DNA of 63,594 nucleotides, filler included, from Salisapilia sapeloensis CBS 127946 (GCA_023334545.1; 15 parts of 15 records of this genome joined end to end with filler, not necessarily neighbours in it); one strand, 5' to 3'; shown: positions 1,640 through 15,163, counted from the first letter of the whole stretch. A program made the numbers and translations. The notes: generated by a model not told the origin, from the sequence alone.

Positions 1640-4600
1640 TAGCCTAAAATAACAGGTATCTACCCACTACATTGACGAAGCGTTTGCTGAGTCTGTTCAA
1701 AGCGACGTAAAAGGGACTACAGGCAACATTCAAGCGGGATGTGTGCATCCTTCGGAAAGGAAAACATGAACTTCGTGCATACAATCACTCGTCAAAAGTA
1801 TACGTCACCAATGCTGTGAGTCGAGAGTGCACATTAAACCAAAGAATGATAGGCCAAGTAATGAGCTTATCAGCTCACGACAATGCCGTGGTGGATCAAG
1901 TGTGGCACCAGCGTCTCGGAAATCTCAATGATGCATCGACGGCAAAGCTTTTGAAGGAGTATGGCATCCACTACAAGCAAAGTGCGCCATGTCAGTGCAT
2001 GCCGTGCGTGAAAGCGGAATTAAGTCGTAAGCCGTTCTATGAAAAGAAACGTGTTGTCGGAAAAGATTAAGCATTCATATCAGTGGACTATGTGGGGCCA
2101 TTCAATCAGAAGTCATTTGATGAACACACGCGATTGATGGTATTGATAGCTGAGCCATTTCACATTGCAGCGGCATATTCACTCAAAGGACAAACAGGAA
2201 CAGAGCAATTGGAAGGTCTCGCCTATCTCATCAAATACGTTGAAGCACAAGCCGAGCCACAAGTCAAGGTGAAATTTCTGAAGACGGACAATGCGCCAGA
2301 GTAAGTGGGAGGTGTAATTGCGGAATACTGCCACCAAAATCATATAACAAAGCACTTCAGTGAACCTTACACACCACAACAAAATGGTCTCATCGAGCGA
2401 GAGAATCGAGTCATTTTGGAAATGGGAAGGTCAATAATGGAGCATGCAAAACTACCAACAAAGTTCTGGGCCGACGCAATGTCCACGGCTGGGTACATTT
2501 GTAATCGATGTCCAACCAAAACTCTGGGCAACAAAATGCCTATGCATGCTCTCAAAGGAGATCGCCCTACAATATCGAACTTGCGCGTGTTCGGATGCGA
2601 TGCGCAAATATGGGTACCGGATGTGAAGCGGTCAAATCTAGTAGCAAAGACACAAGATGCAATATATGTCGGATACGCACAAGAAGGTGGATACCTCTTT
2701 CGCACGCCAGCAGACAATTTCAAGAAGCTTTCAACAGCCCGATATGCAGTCCTCCTTGAAGACAAGTTCATGTATGGCCAAGAAAACGTGCCTCGAATGA
2801 ATCAATCAACAGGCTCGCTCGACTTCATGGACCATACAATATCTGAAAACAGTGGAAGGTCCTCAGACAGTGGGAGTCCTCTAGACAATGGAAATTCATC
2901 AGACACCAATGGTAGACTAAGTAGCCATGATCCTGGAAGTCGAGCACGCAATACAAACACACCACAAAGAAGCACGCAGGACGCTATTACAGACACATCA
3001 CCCGGGGTTCAAGGGCGTAGTGTGGCTACCATGTCGGCACCAATGATGCAAGATGCCAGAAATATTACACCGACGCCACCACAAAGACGTAGTACAGGAA
3101 TTATGGCAGCACCGAGAGATCAGGAGGCCACTTCGGATACATCGTCGCTAATAAGAAGACGTCATGCTGCCATCATGTCATCTACAAACACACGAAACGC
3201 CACAACGGGTACAGACAGATCGCTAGTGAATCCGCAAACGACGAACGAAGGCTCTCAAGCCTCCCTACCACCGTCATCTCTGAGAAGGAACCTGATGAGT
3301 GGCATGAGTTGGCGCACACATCGATACGAACAACAGATACAAGACCTGACACAGGGGCTGCAGGACCTTCAAAGACGATACAATGAACAACAGGAACAAC
3401 AAAGTAATCGACTGAATGAGATATTAAATCAAGTGGAAGGCATTCGCCTGGATAATACTGTAGACACAAATATGAACCAGCGAACACAAGAAGATCAGTT
3501 AGTTCTGAACACCCAGCAGTCGCAAGTAGCTCAGCTGAACCATCAAATGTATGAAGATGAGGATGATTACTACTACGGTTATCCCATGGTGGAAGAAACT
3601 GACAATGACCACCATGGAAGCAGCAATAACATTGAAGATGACAGTGATTTTGAGATGGATAACTCTCAACGTCAACTTTCCTACGTTCAATCAGGACTAC
3701 TGACGTTTCCTCCACTACCAGCAAACTCATCTGATGAGCTAGAGGATAATCGCATGAGCAACGAAGAGTCCGAAAGTAAAAAATCGCATGACAGTGAGGA
3801 TAGTCCAGTACAGCTCAGACGATTTACCAGAGTCAGACGACTAAGTTGGAGACAAATTTTACACAACGAATGTTACAATGTACTGCAGGCTGAGGTTGAC
3901 ACGAGGAGCTTTGAGGCATCGAACCCAAAAATGCAGATGAAGCGATGGCGTGAAGTGACGCAAGCGAATGGCAAGGTGCAATGCAAGGTGTAATGCAAGA
4001 TGAATTAAATTGCCTCAGCCTGAATAGAACGTATGAACTGGCTGAATTGCCGCTTGGACGGGATGCCATTGCAACGAAATGGGTGTTTAAGCGCAAGACC
4101 TTCGCAGATGGCCAGCTGGACAAGTACAAGGCTCGTCTTGTGGTAAAAGGCTTCAAGCAAGAGCCAGGAATCGACTACTTCGATACGTTCAGTCCTGTTG
4201 CAAGCTACAATACCCTACGACTGCTGCTGGCACTGGTGGTTGAAAATCAATGGTATCGAAGTCAGCTGGATGTGAAGACAGCCTTCCTAAACAGCAAGCT
4301 CGACGAAGAGATCTACGTCCAGCCACCAAAGGAAGTTGACAGCCTCGGTCGTGTATAGAAGCTACACAAGGCACTATATGGATTGAAGCAAGCCAGCCGA
4401 GCATGGTGTGAAAACTTGTCTAACTTCCTTCAGAAGTATGGATTTGATCAGGGCAAAGAAGACACATGGATCTTCACGAAGCGACGCGACTGAATATTGG
4501 TCATTGTACTACTCTACATAGATGATATTCTTATGCTAAGCGACAGCAGCAAAGGAATCCAGTCAACGATACGAGTCATCGAAGCCAACTACAGCGTCAA

Positions 4601-5470
4601 TGTGTTCGAAAAAGTCAGCTCATTCCTGAGAATTCAACTGAGCTGGAACGACACTGATAAATGCATGGACATGCATCAGGTCAAGTATATCGAAAAAATG
4701 ATCAAGCACTACCGGATGGAAGAATGCAAAGGATCCGACATTCCCATGAGTGAAGGATTTAACAAGGAGCTGCTGGCAGATACGGACATTATTCGTTATG
4801 ATGCTCGAAGTCCATTTGGAAGTATACTTTGAGCAAGTACTCTTACAACACCTGAAATCGCGGTCGCAACTCGGCTACTGGCGCAACAAGTTGACCGGCC
4901 AACCATAACTGTCAAAGCTGGAATTAAAAGTATACTTCGATACTTAAAGGCAACTGGTGATAAAGGTCTGCACTATAGAGCCTCGAAATCGAAGACCAAA
5001 GACGGATTCACGGTCTACGTCGAGGCTGCCTTTGGTGCAGAAGAAGAAAGACGCTCGACGACTGGATATGCTATCTACTACAGCCAAAATCTAGTCGCGT
5101 GGGGGTCGAAGAAGCAGCCGATTGTGACATTGAGCGCGACTGAATCAGAATATGTGGCGATTTGTCATGCGCTGATGGAATGTATCGGACTCGTGAACGC
5201 CATGAAGGATCTGAAAATGAAAGCCGGGATGATCAAGGTGCTCGAAGACAATTAAGGGGCTATTTACTTGGCACACAACAAGTTGGTGATGCAGCGCTCC
5301 AAGCATATCGACATCAAATACCACTGGATTCACGAATTGATTAAAAGGGAAATGGTCACCATCGAGTATTTTCCGACAAAGTGCATGATTGCGGATGTAC
5401 TCACCAAGCCTCTTGCGAAGATAAAGTTTGCAGTGTTCAAGGATCAGCTCATGCTTCATCGAGTGGGAGT
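1640..5470 (+). mobile_element. Decayed Ty1/copia LTR retrotransposon pol region (5' truncated)
   Basis: Copia domain order: protease end (TKRLLSLFKAT*KG...CI), GAG-pre-integrase (WHQRLGNLN), integrase (DYVGPF; TDNAPE; PQQNGLIERENR; FWADAMSTAGYICNR; LRVFGC), RT (KWVFKRK; KYKARLVVKGFKQEPGIDY; QLDVKTAFLN; LYIDDIL), RNase H (RRSTTGY; ESEYVA; EDN*GAI; RSKHIDIKYHW; ADVLTKPL). PPT-like GAGTGGGAG near 5461. Many stops and frameshifts. Confidence 0.93.
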
Positions 5471-5607
5471 TTCGAGAAGCGGCACGGTGACGACGACAGC
5501 ATCGCGGATCTCAAGCGACAACTAGTCGGCACTACGGATGTCAGCCAAATGACCGTTAAAGCGCAACGGATATCAGGACCGAAGAAGTCGTCGCGGATCT
5601 CAGGTCG

Positions 5608-6350
5608 TTGCCTGATTCTGCAAAGAAGACAGTAGCAGGGTTTTTTGTTTTTAGGACTAACTTTCAAATTCACTCTCCAAATTTCCAGCAACTTCCCAAG
5701 TGTGATTTCCAATACAATGTCGCTATTAGTACCCTGACACTGAAGCCAGTACGCAATGTCGAATGGGATCGAGTGCCTAAAACTTTCTTTCGTTCAACAG
5801 CTCTAGATTGCAAAATGATCAACGCATGCCAAGTACGAATTACTGGAATATCTTTTGAAGCTACGTGCATGGATATCAGGAGAACGATAGAGGACAATGA
5901 TTTTGAAGTCATGGATGTGGAAGTGAAAGGTGCTCGACGCAATTGAGCTTTAGCGGAACTCAAAACAGACACTCACGTTCAAAACTTATTGAAAAGTTCG
6001 GCCCTGATGGTCCTGGGTCAATGTGGGTGGGAAATGTTAAACTTCGTTTTTATCCTGTGGACAATACCAAATCAAATATGTGCTATAATTGTCGCGAACC
6101 TGGCCATTTTCGTAACAATTGTCCTAACTTGACGGCAGGTACAAGTACTGTAACCTCTTCTGTCTCAAGCAGCTCCATTGCCAGTTCCTTATTTGCGTCA
6201 AATGCAGTCCAAGTCCAATTCCAAGAGATGGTTCAAAGTCATATTCAAGCTTACGTTCAAAAGATTGGTCAAACGTCGAATCGTCTTGATATTCTTACGC
6301 CTGGTGCCCAGGAAACGACCCAGCGCTTAATCGCATCAGAAGCAACTTAG
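5608..6350 (+). pseudogene. LINE ORF1-like: RRM-like segment plus CCHC zinc knuckle
   Basis: VRITGISFEATCMDIRRTIEDNDFEVMDVEV resembles an RRM beta-alpha start. CYNCREPGHFRNNC (6081-6122) is a perfect CX2CX4HX4C knuckle. Frameshift near 5943. Confidence 0.65.
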
Positions 6351-6949
6351 CGTGCATTTGATGAAGGTATGAACTCGTATGAGTATACTCAAAAGGAGCT
6401 GGTTGCAAGTCACAAACAGTCTGAGCAAAACATTTTGGCAGCTATAGCAGCACTACGTTCAGAGCAGAATTTTCAGAAAGGTGTTCAGTCACGCCAGTAG
6501 ACAAGATCACCAAGAAAAATTTAGCTGGCTGTAGATTAGTAGTGGTATGGATTGGCATGCTAGCATGTCTGATACATCTTCAAGTCACGGGTGTTGCTGC
6601 ATCGACTCGAGATCTAACTGAAGCGGTGTGTTTAGACTCTCCTGTTGGTGTTACTTCCAACACAGCAGGATACACTGCACCACAATCAAGTGGATACAGC
6701 TATCATGATCATTGCGAGTCTGATGGGTCTGAGTTTAACGATCTCGAATACGCAGGTTACCAACCTATTCGGCAAAGCCGAGGAGGAAATCGCCATCATC
6801 CTTGGAGACCAGATAAAGTAAGATTCACTGACAACAGTTCTAGCGGTTATCTACGTGTACTCGCAGACATGCTACAGCAAGAACACTACGCAGGTGGTTT
6901 CATCGGCGATGACGGCAGTACGAATGTTGATGCAGAATCTGACAATACC

Positions 6950-7690
6950 GTCAAAATTGGAACTTTTAGCATCAATAAAAGTATTCGCCTTAGGATCGAA
7001 AACGAGGTTACTGAATGGATGATAGGGCACAAGATGGATATATTCGTACTTAGCGACGCTGGTCTACCGGGCAAAACAACACAAAGTATATGGAGTAAAT
7101 CAATAGACAATGACGCTCGAGCTCCTGCTTTGACTTTAGTAGGATGCAAGCTAGTTGCAATACTTCTTCACCTGGAGCGTTGGGAAAATCGTCTTGATAA
7201 GAACCAAATAGTATATTCGGAATCGTAGCGATCAATTCTCATCGTATTACGCTTAGGAAATGGTCGCAAGTTGTGGATTATTGGGACATACATACATCAT
7301 ACGCCAGATCAGCATGAACAAGGAGTGCTCGCGGAATGAAATTGGATTCATTACCAAGTAGCTACAGGTCAAAAGCTTCGAGCACTTATATTGGTATCTG
7401 GAGGCATTAATACTTATCAAAATGAAGAGATCGATCGCCATGGTAGTACCCCGAGGTCCCCTGCAGCGGTGCAAATGGGACAGCGCTTTAAGGCCTGGAT
7501 AAATACTATGAAGCTGACATCGACATTTCGCGTTCGTCATTCTTAGATACCTCGTTTTACATACAATCACGGCGACACCAGGACGCTTGACGATATATAC
7601 ATAACTCAATCTCATTCAGTAAGTGTACGCCAAAGTGACATCTGGATTGATTCGATCCACTCGAGTGACCATACGGGTGTTCCGTATAGA
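6950..7690 (+). pseudogene. Apurinic-like (APE/EEP) endonuclease domain of LINE ORF2
   Basis: Motifs in the expected order: VKIGTFSIN, DIFVLSDAG, VAILL, WIIGTYIH, ILVSGGIN (GDFN position), TFRVRH..PRFTY, RTLDDIYI, SSDH (7664-7672). Confidence 0.8.
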
Positions 7691-8685
7691 GAGACTCACT
7701 TAGATCGATATTCGACTATATCTCATGCTTTAAAGGGGGCCAAAGACATCCGGGTGGTCAACACAAGGAAAAAAATCCGGATGAATTGACAAAGTATTCC
7801 GTGCATACACAGATCGTGTTTGGTAGTGGACATCTCCACCCTATTGACGATATGATTCAAGACTATAGTTCGACCGAAGAAACACTCTGATGGCTCGAAG
7901 CAGCTATAATTGATGTACAGCAGTGCCTCTATACTAGCGGCAAGTCGCTTTGGGGCGAATCTAGCCAGAGCAAGCATTATCTCTCCAGGCATATTGGTGT
8001 TGAACATTCACGTATATGCAACGGCCAGATTAAAGCTGTACGCAGACATGTACGAGAAGATGATTTAAGTGACACAGCGATCAGAGATCTCGTCAATGAC
8101 ATTCAGTGGCCGGTTTGGGTGACACAGCCCGAAAGATTGATACCAGGATCAGCACACGAAATACCGACTCAAGTGTTGCTATGCTACTTGGAAAATCTAC
8201 CACGCACATCCCCTGGCGGTAATTATCGGGACTAGTCTGATAAGGTGTACAAGGCCTGACGAAAAGTTTTGAAGATTTGGAGGGACTGGCGATAAAATTA
8301 ACAACAGAAGACTATCCAAAGCAACCGACAACAGTACTTTAATAATCAAAACTTTCGTTAATTTCTAAGACACACTTAACATAAAGGCTCTCCACTTGTA
8401 TCGATCCGTAGTGCTATAGTCACGGGTAGCCATGCAGAGCCAAGATACACGGAAGATCGAGCTGAAGTCTCCCATGAACTCACTCACCTGCTGGACACTT
8501 GGGTTCTACCGTCGGAGCGTACATTGAGACCATAACACTTAGATACATGGGAAAGCGATGATACAGAAGAATTTCCAACTTTCATAAAGGAGTGGATTGT
8601 ACCTGGCATGCAGCAACAAGATCATCAAGCGAGTCTATCTACTAATTTTCCAACAGAGTGATCTGATTATCAGTACACGGAAGAG

Positions 8686-9990
8686 ATGCAACGTAATGTG
8701 GATAAGATCCTGAAAAAGCGAGTTGCACCAGGGCATGGAGTATCTCAAGAGATGTGGATCACGGCTCCATGCGTAGTTCGCTGTCGTGAACGGCGCATTA
8801 TCGACTTGATCCTGCAAATTGGGAAAGCTCCACAAGTCATTCGACGAAAGCAGATCGTATTCCTCCGAAAGACACAAGATATAGATTCTACACTTGACAA
8901 TAGTAAGGGACTGCCACCACGGAGACCTACTACAGTCCAAAGTGCCTTCGCAAGTCGATTACAGTGCGTTATTAAACAATACGTGGAAGCAGGTTTACTG
9001 AATCATATTTTACAACACGGTTTTCAGAAGACTCGGACGGTGAATGATGCATCTCTCCTTACTACACTGCTAATTGAGCACGCAAAGGAAAATCAAAAAT
9101 CTTTGTTTTTAGTGAGTAAAGATTGTCTCAAGCGCTATGATCGGATTCCTGCCTGGGTAATGGACTACATTTACCGACGACTCAATGTTCCTGATACTCC
9201 GCGGACCCTTATGCTGGACCTTCTCGGTCCTGGACAAATGGATCTACGAACAGACTTCGGATGGATAAACACAGGAGAACGGGAATTTGGTATTGGTCAA
9301 GGCTCCATTCTATCGATATTACACATTGGATACTATATGGATCTCCTTCAAGAAAAAATGCACCAGGGTAGAGACCAAGTAAGCATACATCATCATCAAA
9401 TTGGAGATGGTATGTCGTACGCCAGTGCCGTATTTGCCGATGACAAGCTTGACATCGCTACATCCTATGCCGGCATCCAGGAACGAGCAATAATTTCTAA
9501 TATATTTACGGGTAAGCGTAGTACGGGATGTGTCTTTGGCGCTACTAAATCGTTTATGGCGTACTACACTCCATGTCCGCTACACTTTGAGCCAGTCCAG
9601 TTCAATGATGGAAACGGAAACCCACACCGATACAGATTGTTGCTCCATCTGAAGGATTTAAGCATCTAGGTATTATGCAAGGAATAGAGGACCAGTGGGC
9701 AAGAACGATAAACCCCGTTTGGATGCAGCTTCAACAGGATGCAAAAAGAATCACGCGCATGCAGTTATCTTTGCCTAAATTTCGGTACATAGTCAATCGC
9801 ATTTGGATCCCGCGTCTACGTTATCGTACTACGCTTAGTGGAGCTGTCCGTATTGCGGATGACATGGATAAGTTTATACGGCAAATTGCACGTCAAGTTC
9901 TACGCTTACCGTACTCCCTGCCACAGTACGTCTATCATGACGATACTATCGGTCTCGGTCTTCAGAGTTGTGCAGCTGATAGCCAAGTAT
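8686..9990 (+). pseudogene. Non-LTR reverse transcriptase domain
   Basis: KRVAPGHG, RRPTTVQSAF (RPIsl position), QHGFQKTRTVND, SKDCLKRYD (D..KAFD position), GIGQGSILS, VFADD, then thumb motif DDTIGLGL after a frameshift near 9670. Confidence 0.9.
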
Positions 9991-10598
9991 TTCAGGGCAA
10001 TGAGTTTCTCCGTATACTTAATACACCAATGTTACCTGTTTATCATGCTGTCATGGATAGACTAGAAGCATACCAAGGGCGGGCAGGTCTTACAAGGTGT
10101 CCTCTAGAAGATGTTATTCGTCCTCCGAAGCACATTCAAACCTGGCTTGCAAATAACATTCGAGCTCTGGCGGATATGCGCAACGTGACAAAAGTGATAG
10201 CAAAGTGGAAAACACCGGATCATTTAAAGTCCAATCGCTCATGTGATAGATCACTTACGGCGACGTTACCTCCTTATTTACAAACCAAACTCGTTGCCTT
10301 CAATTGGAATTCTAGTCGTAAATTACGATATGTTGGAGACTCGTGTAACGCATCGGGCACCAAAATGCAAATACAGGACGACTTACAGAATTAATTTAAG
10401 TGGAAATCAAGTCAACGGCATCGCGTTACTGAGCTATATTCATTTTGGCAGACGACATTGGTAAATAATGAGACGCAACTGCTGCACGAGGCTGTCGGGT
10501 GCGTGCCAATGGCTCCAAGCATGTTCGGCTATAGTATGCGGATCGGAATCGGTTCATGGATACTTGCTGCACAAATTTTAGTTGACCCAGGTACTCCG

Positions 10599-10724
10599 GA
10601 GTATTTGACGCATGAGATAGGCTATAGACTGGATAAACGGGTTCAAGAGGACGAATTCGGGAAGCAAATACACATTCGTTGGTGGCATGAATATCCGTGT
10701 GGGAGTGACACTTGGATTGAACGG
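10599..10724 (+). other. Chromodomain-like segment within LINE ORF2
   Basis: EYLTHEIGYRLDKRVQEDEFGKQIHIRWWHEYPCGSDTWIE parallels the chromodomain pattern EY....ILDKR.....YLVKW.GY....TWE. It is in the same frame as the RT thumb and RNase H. Confidence 0.45.
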
Positions 10725-10955
10725 GCACACAATCATACAAGCTGGGAATACGAAGATGTGTGTGTCGTTATTGAGCCAGAACATTTTCCTGTGGTCAGAG
10801 GCAGAAAATCTAAAGTCATTGTTTGGTCAGATACGTGTGTCGGGGAAGTACAAGGAAGAACACCACGAGCCGCACTCACTGAAACTATCTCCGGCAGTCA
10901 TCGTCGCTACATGGCAATACAACGTAGTGAAAGTGTGCCCGATATGGCTACGAAT

Positions 10956-11111
10956 TGCTTTGTATGCAATAGGTAACGACATGCTGAATTCTGCTCACAG
11001 TGTATACGATATCACCATCGAAATTGTGTCCTTACCACATGCAGCGCAAATTGGGATCCGGTCGACGTATACGATCAGTATATCGAAGCAGCGTGGCGGT
11101 GTATTACCAGT
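10956..11111 (+). other. PHD-finger-like segment within LINE ORF2
   Basis: Read-through gives CFVC-NR*RHAEF-CSQC-IRYH-H-RN-C-x22-WRCITS, i.e. C-x2-C-x8-C-x2-C-x4-H-x2-C...W-x-C-x2-(S; AGT is one substitution from TGT). It is hidden from the ORF track by the TAA at 10974. Confidence 0.65.
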
Positions 11112-11141
11112 AATGCCGAGGCAAGTGAGTGTACGTATAAA

Positions 11142-11590
11142 GTTGGCGATGGCAGTGTCACTGACGCAACTACCGAAATGGTTGCTGGTGGATGATCATA
11201 TTTAAATGGTCACGGTGAGCAAATGCAAGGACAGTTAATAATCCACCGCTCGGACATTACGTCAACACGTTGTGAGCTTCACGTGCTTATTGCTGCGTTG
11301 GTTCATGCTCAGGATACTGGTAATCAAATATGCGATAATCGATGTGCTATTTCGCTTTTCAATAAAGCACGCAGAATCAAGACTCGAACATCTAAAGAGA
11401 TTGTTAAATATGGTGATACACATCGAATGGAGATCAAAACACTAATAACACTTATGCGGGAGTTTGGTATGATGACATGCGAGTGGGTCGGCTCTCATCA
11501 TGAACACGAGGCTACTGCGGATACAACACTCTTTCATAAACGACAAACACTGGCGGTAGCAGATACAGCAGCGAAATCTGCTCTTAGCAC
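11142..11590 (+). pseudogene. RNase H domain of LINE ORF2
   Basis: VGDGSV (D1), STRCELHVLIAAL (E), QICDNRCAI (D2), EWVGSH, AVADTAAK (D3). Confidence 0.85.
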
Positions 11591-11903
11591 GACTATGAGT
11601 CAGTCCTATCAGGATAATATGTGTATGGACACTTGAATACTAGTAGATGACACTGACCGTATTGTGACGGGTAACGTCCTCGAGTATTTGCATCGAACAC
11701 TACAGCGACAAAATCTAACAGAGCACATTAAGCGAATCCACGACAAACCCGCCGAATTACAATACTTACACACGCGCCCATTACCGATGCCGAAAATGTG
11801 CCACTGGGACCAACACTTGTGCCGGTTCTATCGGAGAGTTGTTACCGGCCAACTGCATACGAACGCGAAGAAACATTTGTTCGACGACCGCTGGAGTCCA
11901 CAA

Positions 11904-11972
11904 TGTCGTGTTTGCCCGAAGTTTCACCATGATGCTCAATCTCATCGCTTTGGTGTCAACGATCCTCAATGT
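11904..11972 (+). other. C-terminal CCHC-type finger of LINE ORF2
   Basis: CRVCPKFHHDAQSHRFGVNDPQC sits after RNase H, as expected for the LINE ORF2 zinc knuckle. Confidence 0.55.
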
Positions 11973-13628
11973 ATACTCGCATCCAAGCTTGACATGATGC
12001 TAACTGAACCTCATTGTGAAACTGAACGTGAACTATTTCTACCTGATCAACGGTTCTTTCCTCCGATTATAGGGTCCAGCCTAGCGCAATCGTTCAATCT
12101 GCCTGCTCGAGTTCTATGGACGGATGGTGGAACTAAAAGATGCCTTTGGTCGATGATGGTTGAGTTGACAATTGGTCTTGGTGCGACTCCCAGTGACCTC
12201 ATACTATCGCCGATCCGACTGACAGTACTCAACGATGTATCACTCAAACCCATTTATTTCGTGAACACAGCGAGCCAAAGCTCCATCCTGGTGGTCGACT
12301 AATACCTTGTGCATCAAGTGAAGCATTAAGACAAATTATGAATGATAAAGGCGGACGATATGATATTCGACTGAGTCAATGGACACCGGGGTGGTACACT
12401 GCAAAACTTACGTTTCGACTTCAAAAGCCTAGTTTACTGGTAAACCAGCTCGCAGAACCATCATTATGTCGCGAATGGTGGGAGGATACAATTGCAGATA
12501 TTAAATTGCAGGGAGCTCAACCTACAGTTGACGTCTACTGGGTTACCACAGATGCACTTCAACCAGGTATACGTGCCGTCGAGGAACTACTGCCAACTTG
12601 GATGCTAGAGATACCACCAGGGTCATTGAAAATGCCAACCGATAGATCAATTTATCAAGCGGCATACATCAAATTTAAGGAAGTATTCTCGACGAATCCG
12701 GATACTATTAAAGTTGGGTACATCTCTCTTCGCTCATCGGACGTTCAGTATCACGCACGAGCTATGCAAGTATTAACGTCCAGCTTGATACGGGATTTTA
12801 GTACTTCCTGGATTCGATATGGATTTACGAGCCAGATAGATCCGTTTACTGCACTTCCACATCCACTTTTTAACCTTACAGAGCGGAGGATGTTCCAGCC
12901 TGCACCTCGTGCACTCTCTGTCCTCGGTACTTTTGCGAATCAATTTCCGGCGGTATATGACGCTCCTGTGGGGTGGAAAAAGTTTCCTACTATGACCGAA
13001 GACACGCAATCCTGGTGTCGGGCCATGCCGTATACACATAAAGGAGTCAAAGTTCTGCACACGCGGTTATTCACACGTCATTGGGAAATACTTCGCCGCT
13101 ATTGAAATATGTCGTGTCAACGTACGATCGAAATAATCGAAGATAACGCTCTCATGTCACTCCACGAGGACGTGAATACAAGCATTCGAAGTAGGGTACA
13201 AGAATGTGACTATATAGCAGGGTCGAGTCAATAAAAGCGGATATCTTCGGCCTTAGAAAGATTATCTGTACGATTGGCTTCATGGCATCACGAGCGCGAA
13301 AATGCTAGACAACGTGAACGTCTATTTTTCAGTGTGCCTCTGCTAACAGCTCCCGGTGCAAGTACGATCCCTCCTTCACCGCTTCCCCCTCCGGAACCTC
13401 CTGATCACACTGGACGCATGACGCCAACCTCCAACTGATAACTGTCTTCTTCTGCCCTGGGTTGCCCCGGTTCGCCCCACCAGATTGCCGACTCGCTTGT
13501 CTTTCCTTTCATTTTCTATTCAGTTTCACAAGATGTAGTTGTTCTTTTCAGCTTCGGGCGCAAGATGGGCAAATGCTCATCTGAGTCCTGGGCTCCTACC
13601 ACAGGGTTGTCTCCGGACTGCTCTGTAG

Positions 13629-14237
13629 TTAACGCCGCTGCTTCGCGCGGTGTTGGGTGTAGTTAGCCGACATAACTTCATAAATAAATAGCTCATGTGA
13701 ACTTCTCTCCAGAGCTGCCAGTGTCTTGACCGTGGCTAGGCCAGTCCTCCACAGAGATGAATTGAGCAATAGCGATCCGGTGAGATTGAAGCCAGCTTGG
13801 AGCAAAAGTCGATGACCAGGATGCGAAGTTGGAAGGCCTCGGCAAAGCATTTCAACCACACGTTGTGAGGTTGCAGAACAGCCCATTGACCATGCGCGAA
13901 CCGTACTCGTGGCTAACGTGAGAAGCTCAATATCAAGATTTGGTATACCGATTCCGCCCGAAGAAATAGAAATAGGCAAGCGAGCAATAGCAGAAGCGAC
14001 CCATGCCCGCTTAACTGCATGTCAACGACGAAAGATCCCTCTCCAGGTATATAGAATGTTCGTATAGCATTGTCGTAGGCGATAATGCATTCGAGCCATT
14101 TGGGCACTTTCATTTATCAGTGAATCATCATTAAAGTGGTCTGTTCTCCATCGCCAGATCGCATGGAGCATTTTTGCTGCTCGGCCCGCCCAGCATTTGT
14201 CTAGAATGGACGTGACCAGAAGTGAAGACATGGTCAC
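13629..14237 (-). pseudogene. Second non-LTR (L1/Tx1-like) RT thumb fragment, opposite strand
   Basis: PISISSGGIGIPNLDIELLTL is the conserved LP...GGLG.P.L motif that follows the RT core. Upstream frames are broken. Confidence 0.55.
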
Positions 14238-14428
14238 TTGGAAGAGCAGTGTGCGATGATCCTCTTGGGAAGTTTAATCGAGTTAGAAGAAGCTATCAGA
14301 AACAAAATATTCAAACGGTAGTTTTTGACCGACCATTTCATTTTTCTGGCACTCACAACGATATTCGCAGGCCAACACACGAGCGCTCTTGTTCCAATTG
14401 AAGGCTGCAACATTGCCGTTTGTAGAAG

Positions 14429-15163
14429 ATGACAGAGATTACACCACCTTTTCTCGTCCTTGCCGGCGACAAGCAGCCCGATGAAGAGACTGTAGTTGCT
14501 CTGGCACTGGAAATTACCGCTGCTAGTGATGGTGCAGCTCGAACGAGTACGTTTTGCTTGGACACGAACAATGAGGCGTTAAGTTGCCGCGGTAATGTCT
14601 ACCGATCGACAGGAAGCAAGCTCTGTTTCTGCGCCCATGAGCTCACAGGGCTCATTATTGGCATGGATCGCTATTGGCGTGTGCGGAGAGTCTACGACGC
14701 TGTACACCAAGATGAGCAACTCCAACATCTTTTTCACGATCGGAGCCACCTGCAGCTGCAGCGTATGTGGCGATTGCTCTCAAAGCGACATACTGACCTT
14801 AATGCATACGAAGTCAGTCGGTCCAAAGCGTTTACTCGAAAACCATTCAGCGATGACGAACTGCAGGCTCTTATTGATGGCTACCAAAAGTATTCCAATT
14901 CCAACGCTAAATGCATTAAGATCCTTCAAGACCCGGAATTTAAAGAAAGACTAAAAGATCGGAGCACCGCACAAATCAAATTGAAATTTAACGCTTTCAA
15001 AGCTTCAGGCAAACTCGGCAAAACGAAGGCTAGCCAGAACGAAGAGCAAAGCGGCAACGAGGAAGGTTGCCCATCTACTCACCAGGAAGATCAGCATCAG
15101 CCTCCAGTGGCACATCTGCAACAGCAGCAGACGCTTCAGGCGGAGGGACAGAGAACGATCGAG
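14429..15163 (+). CDS. Protein with two tandem TRF/telobox-like Myb repeats (3' truncated by contig end)
   Basis: Repeat 1: FCAHELTGLIIGMDRY...LFHDRSHLQLQRMWRLL. Repeat 2: KPFSDDELQALIDGYQKY...ILQDPEFKERLKDRSTAQIKLKF. Confidence 0.6.

Follow-up and report, generated by a model that had tools for sequence, protein, structure and literature searches.

The window considered here comprises 63,594 nucleotides of DNA (filler included) from the oomycete Salisapilia sapeloensis CBS 127946 (GCA_023334545.1), whose assembly amounts to 22.4 Mb in 1,365 contigs, and our analysis concerns a piece of 15,163 bases within it. We put at roughly 0.6 the probability that the plus strand of this piece carries, from 5454 or 5638 to 13695, a decayed copy of an oomycete-restricted, APE-type retrotransposon of the class that has no long terminal repeats (non-LTR), that is, a long interspersed nuclear element (LINE), whose second open reading frame (ORF2) contains a BAH-like barrel and a PHD-like zinc finger side by side. 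This copy is dead. We know of no LINE with chromatin-reader domains of its own, and if that is what these two modules are, this would be the first case of a non-LTR retrotransposon equipped with a chromatin-reader module of its own, gained independently of the chromodomain of chromoviruses; if they are something else, the family would still have an unusually large and divergent ORF2.

Judged from its sequence, the element is an APE-type non-LTR retrotransposon, an identity that stems from its relatives, which give a profile match to the reverse transcriptase (RT) of R2 and, in the database protein P0031, an Exo_endo_phos stretch, and from the lack of LTRs (Table 1). The family profile, made from 23 related proteins, matches the RT plus thumb of the R2 retrotransposon with an E-value of 3.7e-9 and, among solved structures, leaves human L1 ORF2p unmatched. 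The RT piece of the window itself gives a weak phmmer match to the R2 RT (E 0.065) and an RVT_1 match of E 5.8e-4 and 20 bits, which is below the cut-off, with relatives reaching up to 26.6 bits, and its RT region is 59% identical in a second copy of the element on contig C871. The thumb motifs GFKHLG, RYIVN..RLRYR and GLGL span 9654-9971, in blocks conserved between the window copy, the C871 copy and all relatives. As for the endonuclease, Pfam found no match on the window pieces, PDB sequence and profile searches of the APE piece returned nothing, and genome-wide Pfam scans reading through stops (Exo_endo_phos and RNase_H) gave no match on this contig. It is in relatives that this domain is recognisable: Exo_endo_phos scores 27.3 bits in P0031 (cut-off 24.5) and 23.8 bits in P0018, the corresponding stretches align at 42% identity to 7247-7786 and 7160-7774 of the window, respectively, and P0023 aligns to 6764-7768. 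There are no LTRs in the window, and no direct repeat longer than 25 nt.

According to a three-frame map and alignment to relatives, ORF2, when read through its lesions, extends from 6764 to 13252, a length of about 2,190 codons that 18 in-frame stops and at least three frameshifts interrupt; for the element in general we put ORF2 at about 2,100-2,200 residues. Its path follows frame 2 (6764-7774), frame 1 (7780-9642), frame 3 (9621-12299) and frame 2 again (12224-13252), with 9609-12299 forming a single frame that is interrupted by four stops (10392, 10974, 11193 and 11634). The relatives align colinearly to ORF2, with tblastn E-values to 1e-150 and below, which is far beyond chance. Much of the original prediction is confirmed, namely that this is a very large APE-type LINE, that its ORF2 is about 2,200 residues long when stops and frameshifts are read through, that a single frame runs from 9675 to about 12270 and that the copy is dead. 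The order that it proposed (APE, RT, two modules, RNase H-like part, CCHC motif and a region without assignment) stands as well, with the APE upheld through relatives and the RNase H by motifs, in the absence of a Pfam match in the window.

The first of the two modules, a block that lies between the thumb motifs and the finger, is conserved in all copies and relatives and displays a conserved aromatic cluster (Y, then some 20 residues, then aromatic-W-Y/H). An AlphaFold2 model, built on the orthologous and stop-free piece of the C871 copy from an 18-sequence alignment, has a pLDDT (predicted local distance difference test) of 89-96 over residues 11-140, and BAH domains, not chromodomains, are what its predicted fold resembles most. 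The best 12 of 48,161 chains compared with the barrel model are all BAH domains, with 78-99 aligned residues versus 55-70 for generic barrels, and a second structural look placed EBS and SHL on top. Foldseek, run on the two-domain model, returned E-values of at least 0.08, nothing being significant, while PDB sequence and profile searches of barrel and finger yielded nothing, ESM Atlas no usable match and BFVD nothing.

The second module lies about 30 residues past the helix of the barrel and follows the family pattern C-x2-C-x8-C-x2-C-x2-(W/Y)-H-H-x2-C, in which ligands 1-6 have the canonical PHD spacing and an aromatic residue (mostly W) precedes the His by two residues; in most members a second His is present in addition, as is a further Cys at a distance of 2-4 residues past the sixth ligand. 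When seven family fingers were compared by hhalign with 26 PHD fingers of the host, the probability was 90.6% (E 1.3e-6, 31 columns covering ligands 1-6), versus 0.1-0.5% in control comparisons. Pfam PHD matches are all in one register and below the cut-off of 24 bits (P0004 at 13.9 bits and E 0.055, P0032 at 0.07, P0012 at 1.9 and P0014 at 2.5), and a genome scan with PF00628 left contigs C672 and C871 untouched. A finger-only model has a pLDDT of 73 and, among the matches listed by Foldseek, most are PHD fingers, at 16-28% identity and below significance. The PHD finger of the original prediction is thus partly supported, as what appears to be a PHD-like C4HC core and not a full C4HC3 finger: the C4HC spacing and the hhalign probability speak for it, while the scores from hhalign, Pfam and Foldseek each fall short of their formal threshold and the terminal C-x2-C pair is absent. 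We consider the fold assignments of barrel and finger, taken together, to be probable.

Both modules are a property of the family, as originally predicted, being found in three diverged copies in this genome as well as in proteins of Phytophthora and Aphanomyces. The three further ORF-bearing copies in the genome are all broken and deeply diverged, the C871 copy extending from the RT to the end (39-59% amino acid identity) and those on C562 and C1207 representing the C-terminal part only. A HMMER profile of barrel and finger, run against 1.84 billion cluster representatives, retrieved 16 proteins, and a word-based search with the RT region also retrieved 16. Every match with a named source comes from Phytophthora (infestans, megakarya, palmivora, fragariaefolia) or Aphanomyces (astaci, euteiches), which agrees with the prediction of an oomycete LINE and gives the family a span of two oomycete orders (Peronosporales and Saprolegniales). 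A hidden Markov model of the barrel family finds 21 oomycete proteins with E-values to 5e-60 (most of these proteins were used in building it). The order of barrel and finger is kept, both among the diverged genomic copies and in the proteins from those two genera, and three Aphanomyces proteins (P0028, P0029 and P0030) have FxDD, barrel, finger and GDGSV consecutively in one protein, P0029 also having FYWR.

The sequences of the modules are also constrained. Synonymous sites are saturated between the window and C871 copies (pS 0.75-0.87), so we give proportions of nonsynonymous (pN) and synonymous (pS) differences instead of dN/dS. pN is 0.25 in the RT, 0.39 in the thumb, 0.40 in the barrel, 0.40 in the finger core and 0.43 in the RNase H-like part, with a pS of 0.75 in the thumb and of about 0.8 in both modules, while an out-of-frame control gives a pN of 0.46 and a pS of 0.57. 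Because pN in the two modules does not exceed the level of the thumb and pS is saturated, both have been kept by selection in a working ORF2.

A number of observations weigh against the picture drawn above and are best considered together. Concerning the barrel, Pfam BAH (PF01426) has no match in the window, the C871 copy or the relatives, PDB-sequence and profile searches return no BAH domain, and the alignment behind the model consists of partly broken genes. The finger does not have the final C-x2-C pair of a PHD finger and displays six of the eight ligands. The RNase H-like part is assigned on motifs only, because profiles were negative in Pfam searches of the window, the C871 copy and the relatives, in a PF00075 genome scan and in a PDB profile search, and hhalign of its alignment with three host RNase H gave 0.3% (these templates are too shallow for this to mean much). 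The database relatives are all hypothetical or unnamed proteins, with fragmentary gene models of which the longest has 1,578 residues, and a provably intact full-length copy was not seen among copies and relatives. Two of the relatives depart from the common plan, P0009 (Phytophthora megakarya), in which GDGSV comes directly after the barrel and the finger is skipped, and P0021 (Aphanomyces astaci), which is devoid of the RNase H-like part; such departures reflect either faulty gene models or true variation within the family. Lastly, evidence on insertion sites is limited to context, this copy being in a Copia element.

In APE-type LINEs, the endonuclease nicks the target, and the nick serves as primer for the RT, which copies the RNA. 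The ORF2 protein of the present family would likewise nick DNA with its APE and then reverse transcribe its RNA at the nick, the RNA probably being recognised through its structured 3' end and the template being removed by the RNase H-like part, while the BAH-like/PHD-like pair would anchor the complex at nucleosomes or on the tails of histones, thereby biasing the choice of insertion sites, which would make it the counterpart in a LINE of the chromodomain borne by chromovirus integrases. A chromatin-reading role for the barrel-finger pair is a tentative proposal, to which we give somewhat less than an even chance. The wider scenario, in which an ancient, oomycete-wide LINE lineage has a histone-reading cassette of the BAH-PHD type in the middle of its ORF2 protein that steers target-primed reverse transcription to particular chromatin, is possible and to us still doubtful.

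An alternative that we regard as neither likely nor negligible is that, in the same LINE family, the modules are a generic SH3-like barrel and a zinc knuckle that serve the ORF2 protein itself, by binding RNA or DNA, maintaining the integrity of the enzyme or recruiting host factors, much as the tower, wrist and C-terminal segments of L1 ORF2p do, the resemblance to chromatin readers being one of fold only. This would fit with a finger that is two ligands short of a PHD and fails every structural significance threshold, and with the finding of no sequence link to cellular BAH or PHD proteins among the 1.84 billion representatives. The lone Pfam BAH gene of the host is moreover unrelated and not followed by a PHD. 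It would be harder to reconcile with the best structural matches, which are exclusively BAH domains and align over longer stretches than generic barrels do, or with EBS and SHL, the best matches of the second look, which have BAH and PHD in this very order. The same holds for the finger, which matches PHD fingers specifically (in its C4HC order and in the aromatic residue before the His) and none of the other profiles tested. Among chromatin proteins, the immediate succession of a barrel and a PHD-type finger is a hallmark pairing.

Two further possibilities have much less in their favour. In the original prediction the pair was a genuine chromodomain with a canonical PHD finger after it, which is now very improbable since the finger is not a full C4HC3 and searches for a chromodomain were all negative: Pfam scans of the window, the C871 copy and more than 20 relatives gave no Chromo match, a genome scan with PF00385 at E-values up to 10 gave 24 places, none of them on C672 or C871, and hhalign of the family block with ten host chromodomains gave 0.1%. 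The barrel, with about 115 residues and seven strands, is moreover closer to BAH, which outranks every chromo fold. Profile searches have thus gone entirely against the chromodomain and half against the PHD finger. Finally, the insert could be an artefact of this copy (a nested element, a captured piece of a host gene or a mis-join), an idea invited by the heavy decay of the copy, its location inside another transposon and the patchy gene models of its relatives. This is hardly credible given that the C871 copy has the same modules with order and frame unchanged, that they recur in Aphanomyces P0028, P0029 and P0030, that both are under purifying selection and that there is no break in composition over 9600-12300.

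A donor for the pair in the host is not apparent. The sole Pfam BAH in the assembly is at C169:51829-52191 on the minus strand, in an open frame of 442 residues with no Cys-rich finger after it, and hhalign of the BAH-like alignment with this single sequence gave 0.1% (too shallow a template for this to mean much). Since this lone BAH is not followed by a finger, there is no host BAH-PHD gene visible as a possible donor in an assembly of only 22 Mb.

Comparison with known systems helps to define what would be new. The nearest structural look-alikes of the modules are the plant BAH-PHD readers EBS and SHL (PDB 5z8n and 5znr); other BAH-PHD cassettes are those of ORC1b (5hh7) and ASH1L (8vlh). 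Unlike the present modules, EBS, SHL and these other cassettes are cellular, with no detectable sequence similarity to the LINE and 11-14% identity when structures are aligned, and their PHD has all eight ligands. Among transposons, the chromoviruses (Ty3/Gypsy elements whose integrase bears a chromodomain), the Chronos group of oomycetes among them (PMC5348765), offer an analogy and no more, that of an integration protein with a module of chromatin-reader fold for which tethering to marked chromatin has been proposed. They are LTR elements whose integrase has a real chromodomain at its C-terminus, whereas here the element is non-LTR and target-primed, and the BAH-like and PHD-like modules are in the middle of ORF2. 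By sequence profile, no solved structure is nearer to RT plus thumb than R2 (PDB 9nl2, 9dou and 8gh6). Its endonuclease is of the restriction-like type and C-terminal, DNA-binding zinc-finger and Myb domains occupy its N-terminus and, unlike this LINE, it has no APE, no RNase H and neither barrel nor finger after the thumb. In the same host group, the closest LINEs so far described are L1 and Utopia elements that have an archaeal-type RNase H added to ORF2 (PMC5348765; PMC4640811). That RNase H is recognisable by profile, whereas its counterpart here is invisible to Pfam and lies after two modules and before about 340 residues of unmatched sequence; Utopia furthermore has a restriction-like endonuclease and not an APE. 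The study of Ustyantsev et al. (2017) makes no mention of PHD, BAH or zinc (PMC5348765). Full-text searches of published papers revealed no non-LTR element with BAH, PHD or chromodomain in ORF2, in keeping with the original remark that the architecture was unrecognised among described oomycete LINEs; an entry in Repbase or Dfam that has drawn no comment may nonetheless exist. LINEs of the CR1/L2 group have a PHD finger in ORF1. In the present LINE, by contrast, the finger is in ORF2 beside a barrel, and ORF1 has a CCHC knuckle.

What is at stake is how LINEs choose their insertion sites, a matter understood for lineages that are sequence-specific and, in broad terms, for L1. The genomes of oomycetes, which include major crop and animal pathogens, are divided into gene-dense regions and repeat-rich, fast-evolving ones marked by heterochromatin, and a LINE able to read heterochromatin marks would help to explain the growth of the repeat-rich compartments.

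Table 1. Features of the analysed piece, in window coordinates.
Feature	Position	Strand	Details
Copia-type pol	1711-5470	+	gag-pre-integrase, integrase/SH3, RVT_2 at E 5e-34 (Pfam)
Candidate target-site duplication AGCTCATG	5446-5453 and 13690-13697	+	second copy abuts tail
ORF1 remnant	5638-6131	+	RRM-like stretch 5638-5943 in frame 1; frameshift; CCHC knuckle 6081-6122 in frame 3
APE-type endonuclease region	6764-7774	+	frame 2, 3 stops; GTFSIN 6959 and SSDH 7661, by eye
Linker and reverse transcriptase	7780-9642	+	frame 1, 9 stops; RVT_1 8959-9456; FADD box 9433-9444
RT C-terminal motifs, thumb and conserved linker	9621-10523	+	frame 3; GFKHLG 9654, RYIVNRIWIPRLRYR 9783, GLGLQSC 9951
BAH-like beta-barrel (about 115 residues), then helix	10524-10922	+	IRWWHEY 10674, VIVWSDT 10815
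PHD-like zinc finger	10956-11042	+	C-x2-C-x8-C-x2-C-x4-H-x2-C-x4-C; TAA at 10974 interrupts this copy
RNase H-like region	11145-11576	+	GDGSV 11145, TSTRCE 11259, ICDN 11328, WVGSHH 11484, ADTAAK 11559; stops 11193, 11634
zf-RVT-like Cys/His motif	11820-11972	+	FY(W/R)R..LHTN...C-x2-C...H-R-F-G
Conserved C-terminal domain (about 340 residues)	12224-13252	+	frame 2; stops 13103, 13232
Conserved 3' untranslated region element	13578-13695	+	structured ~85 nt 13590-13674, invariant GCCGACATAAC block, (ATAA)n tail

Downstream of the finger, GDGSV, TSTRCE, ICDN, W-x-x-S-H and a downstream D are kept in most of 11 aligned members and form a D-E-D-H-D series with the order and rough spacing of a type 1 RNase H. 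The Cys/His block that follows is conserved in copies and relatives and matches Pfam zf-RVT weakly, with E-values of 0.034 for the copy on C871 and 0.12 for P0030. The C-terminal domain is common to the window copy, C871, C562 and C1207 (31-46% amino acid identity) and to the C-terminus of P0031, with no match in Pfam or PDB; a low-recognition lead from ESM Atlas to Rep_trans (rolling-circle Rep) was discounted. The copy at C1207:1-2666 is nearer to the window copy than those on C871 or C562, with 46% amino acid identity in this domain and 79% identity in the 3' untranslated region (UTR). In all, about 600 residues of conserved ORF2 sequence (linker and C-terminal domain) have no known fold.

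Upstream of ORF2, the knuckle of ORF1 is above the Pfam cut-off for zf-CCHC (E 4.6e-6, 26.9 bits). Residues 243-346 of P0023 align to 5638-5931 of the ORF1 remnant, and residues 52-99 of P0031 (RRM tail and knuckle) to 5988-6131 with an E-value of 3e-5, this relative carrying a weak RRM_1 together with a zf-CCHC. Pfam, run on 30 stop-free pieces of the window and 10 of the C871 copy, found nothing in them beyond zf-CCHC, the weak RVT_1 and the weak zf-RVT.

The 3' end of the element has a story of its own. About 330 nt past the ORF2 stop, some 105 nt (13578-13683) show DNA conservation even between copies too diverged for their coding DNA to be aligned, and this stretch is predicted to fold into a Y-shaped structure. 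In three sequences, 32 pairs are predicted, of which 10 show compensatory changes; in twelve sequences, 85% of cells pair, versus 27-47% with slid partners; and RNAalifold retains the long 3' hairpin. The apex of the hairpin (alignment columns 66-73, window 13642-13649) is inverted between subfamilies, being GCTGCTTCGCGC or its reverse complement, with pairing kept. Rfam has no match for this 3' UTR. The tail is (ATAA)n in the window copy and (CATT)5 in C871. Because similarity among copies stops right after this tail, the element ends near 13695, where the 3' UTR element and a simple-repeat tail shared with other copies terminate, and not at 13438 as first proposed.

A 141-nt query from this end finds 11 further places in the genome, one of which is the ORF-bearing C1207 copy. 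Seven of these places are tail-only units of about 105 nt that start no more than three bases from the foot of the structure, and three are shorter. Candidate flanking duplications, exact and 8-10 bp long, are present in 4 of the 10 tail-only copies, and others of about 10-11 bp with one mismatch were seen by eye in three more; like the simple-repeat tail and the lack of LTRs, they speak for a non-LTR element. Since the duplications abut them, the tail-only units are taken to be retrocopies, small and datable, that would record where the enzyme lands, and recognition of the structured 3' end by the RT is suggested by them.

At its other end, the LINE copy lies directly downstream of the Copia-type pol, the 3' end of which seems to have been its insertion site. 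The 8-nt AGCTCATG is the sole exact match of at least 8 nt between the 3' flank and 5300-6000, and when 5454-13697 is taken out the Copia pol frame stops right after the duplicated bases. The genome contains no second copy of this Copia element, so the 8-bp duplication remains a candidate. The 5' end of the LINE is correspondingly uncertain, with ORF1 homology from 5638 and a start at 5454 if the candidate duplication is real. G+C is 40-50% along the piece, with no compositional break over the element, and minus-strand ORFs inside the element have no Pfam match.

Elsewhere in the same genome, Exo_endo_phos matches with internal stops on contigs C1148, C830, C700, C470, C687, C434, C724 and C467 represent other, more conventional decayed LINE families. 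Further along the piece, past the LINE copy, a reading frame that stays open for 246 residues (14426-15163, plus strand) runs off the edge; with matches to Myb-like (E 0.0056) and Com_YlbF (E 2.5e-4) that are both below the cut-off, it may be a host gene beside the transposon nest.

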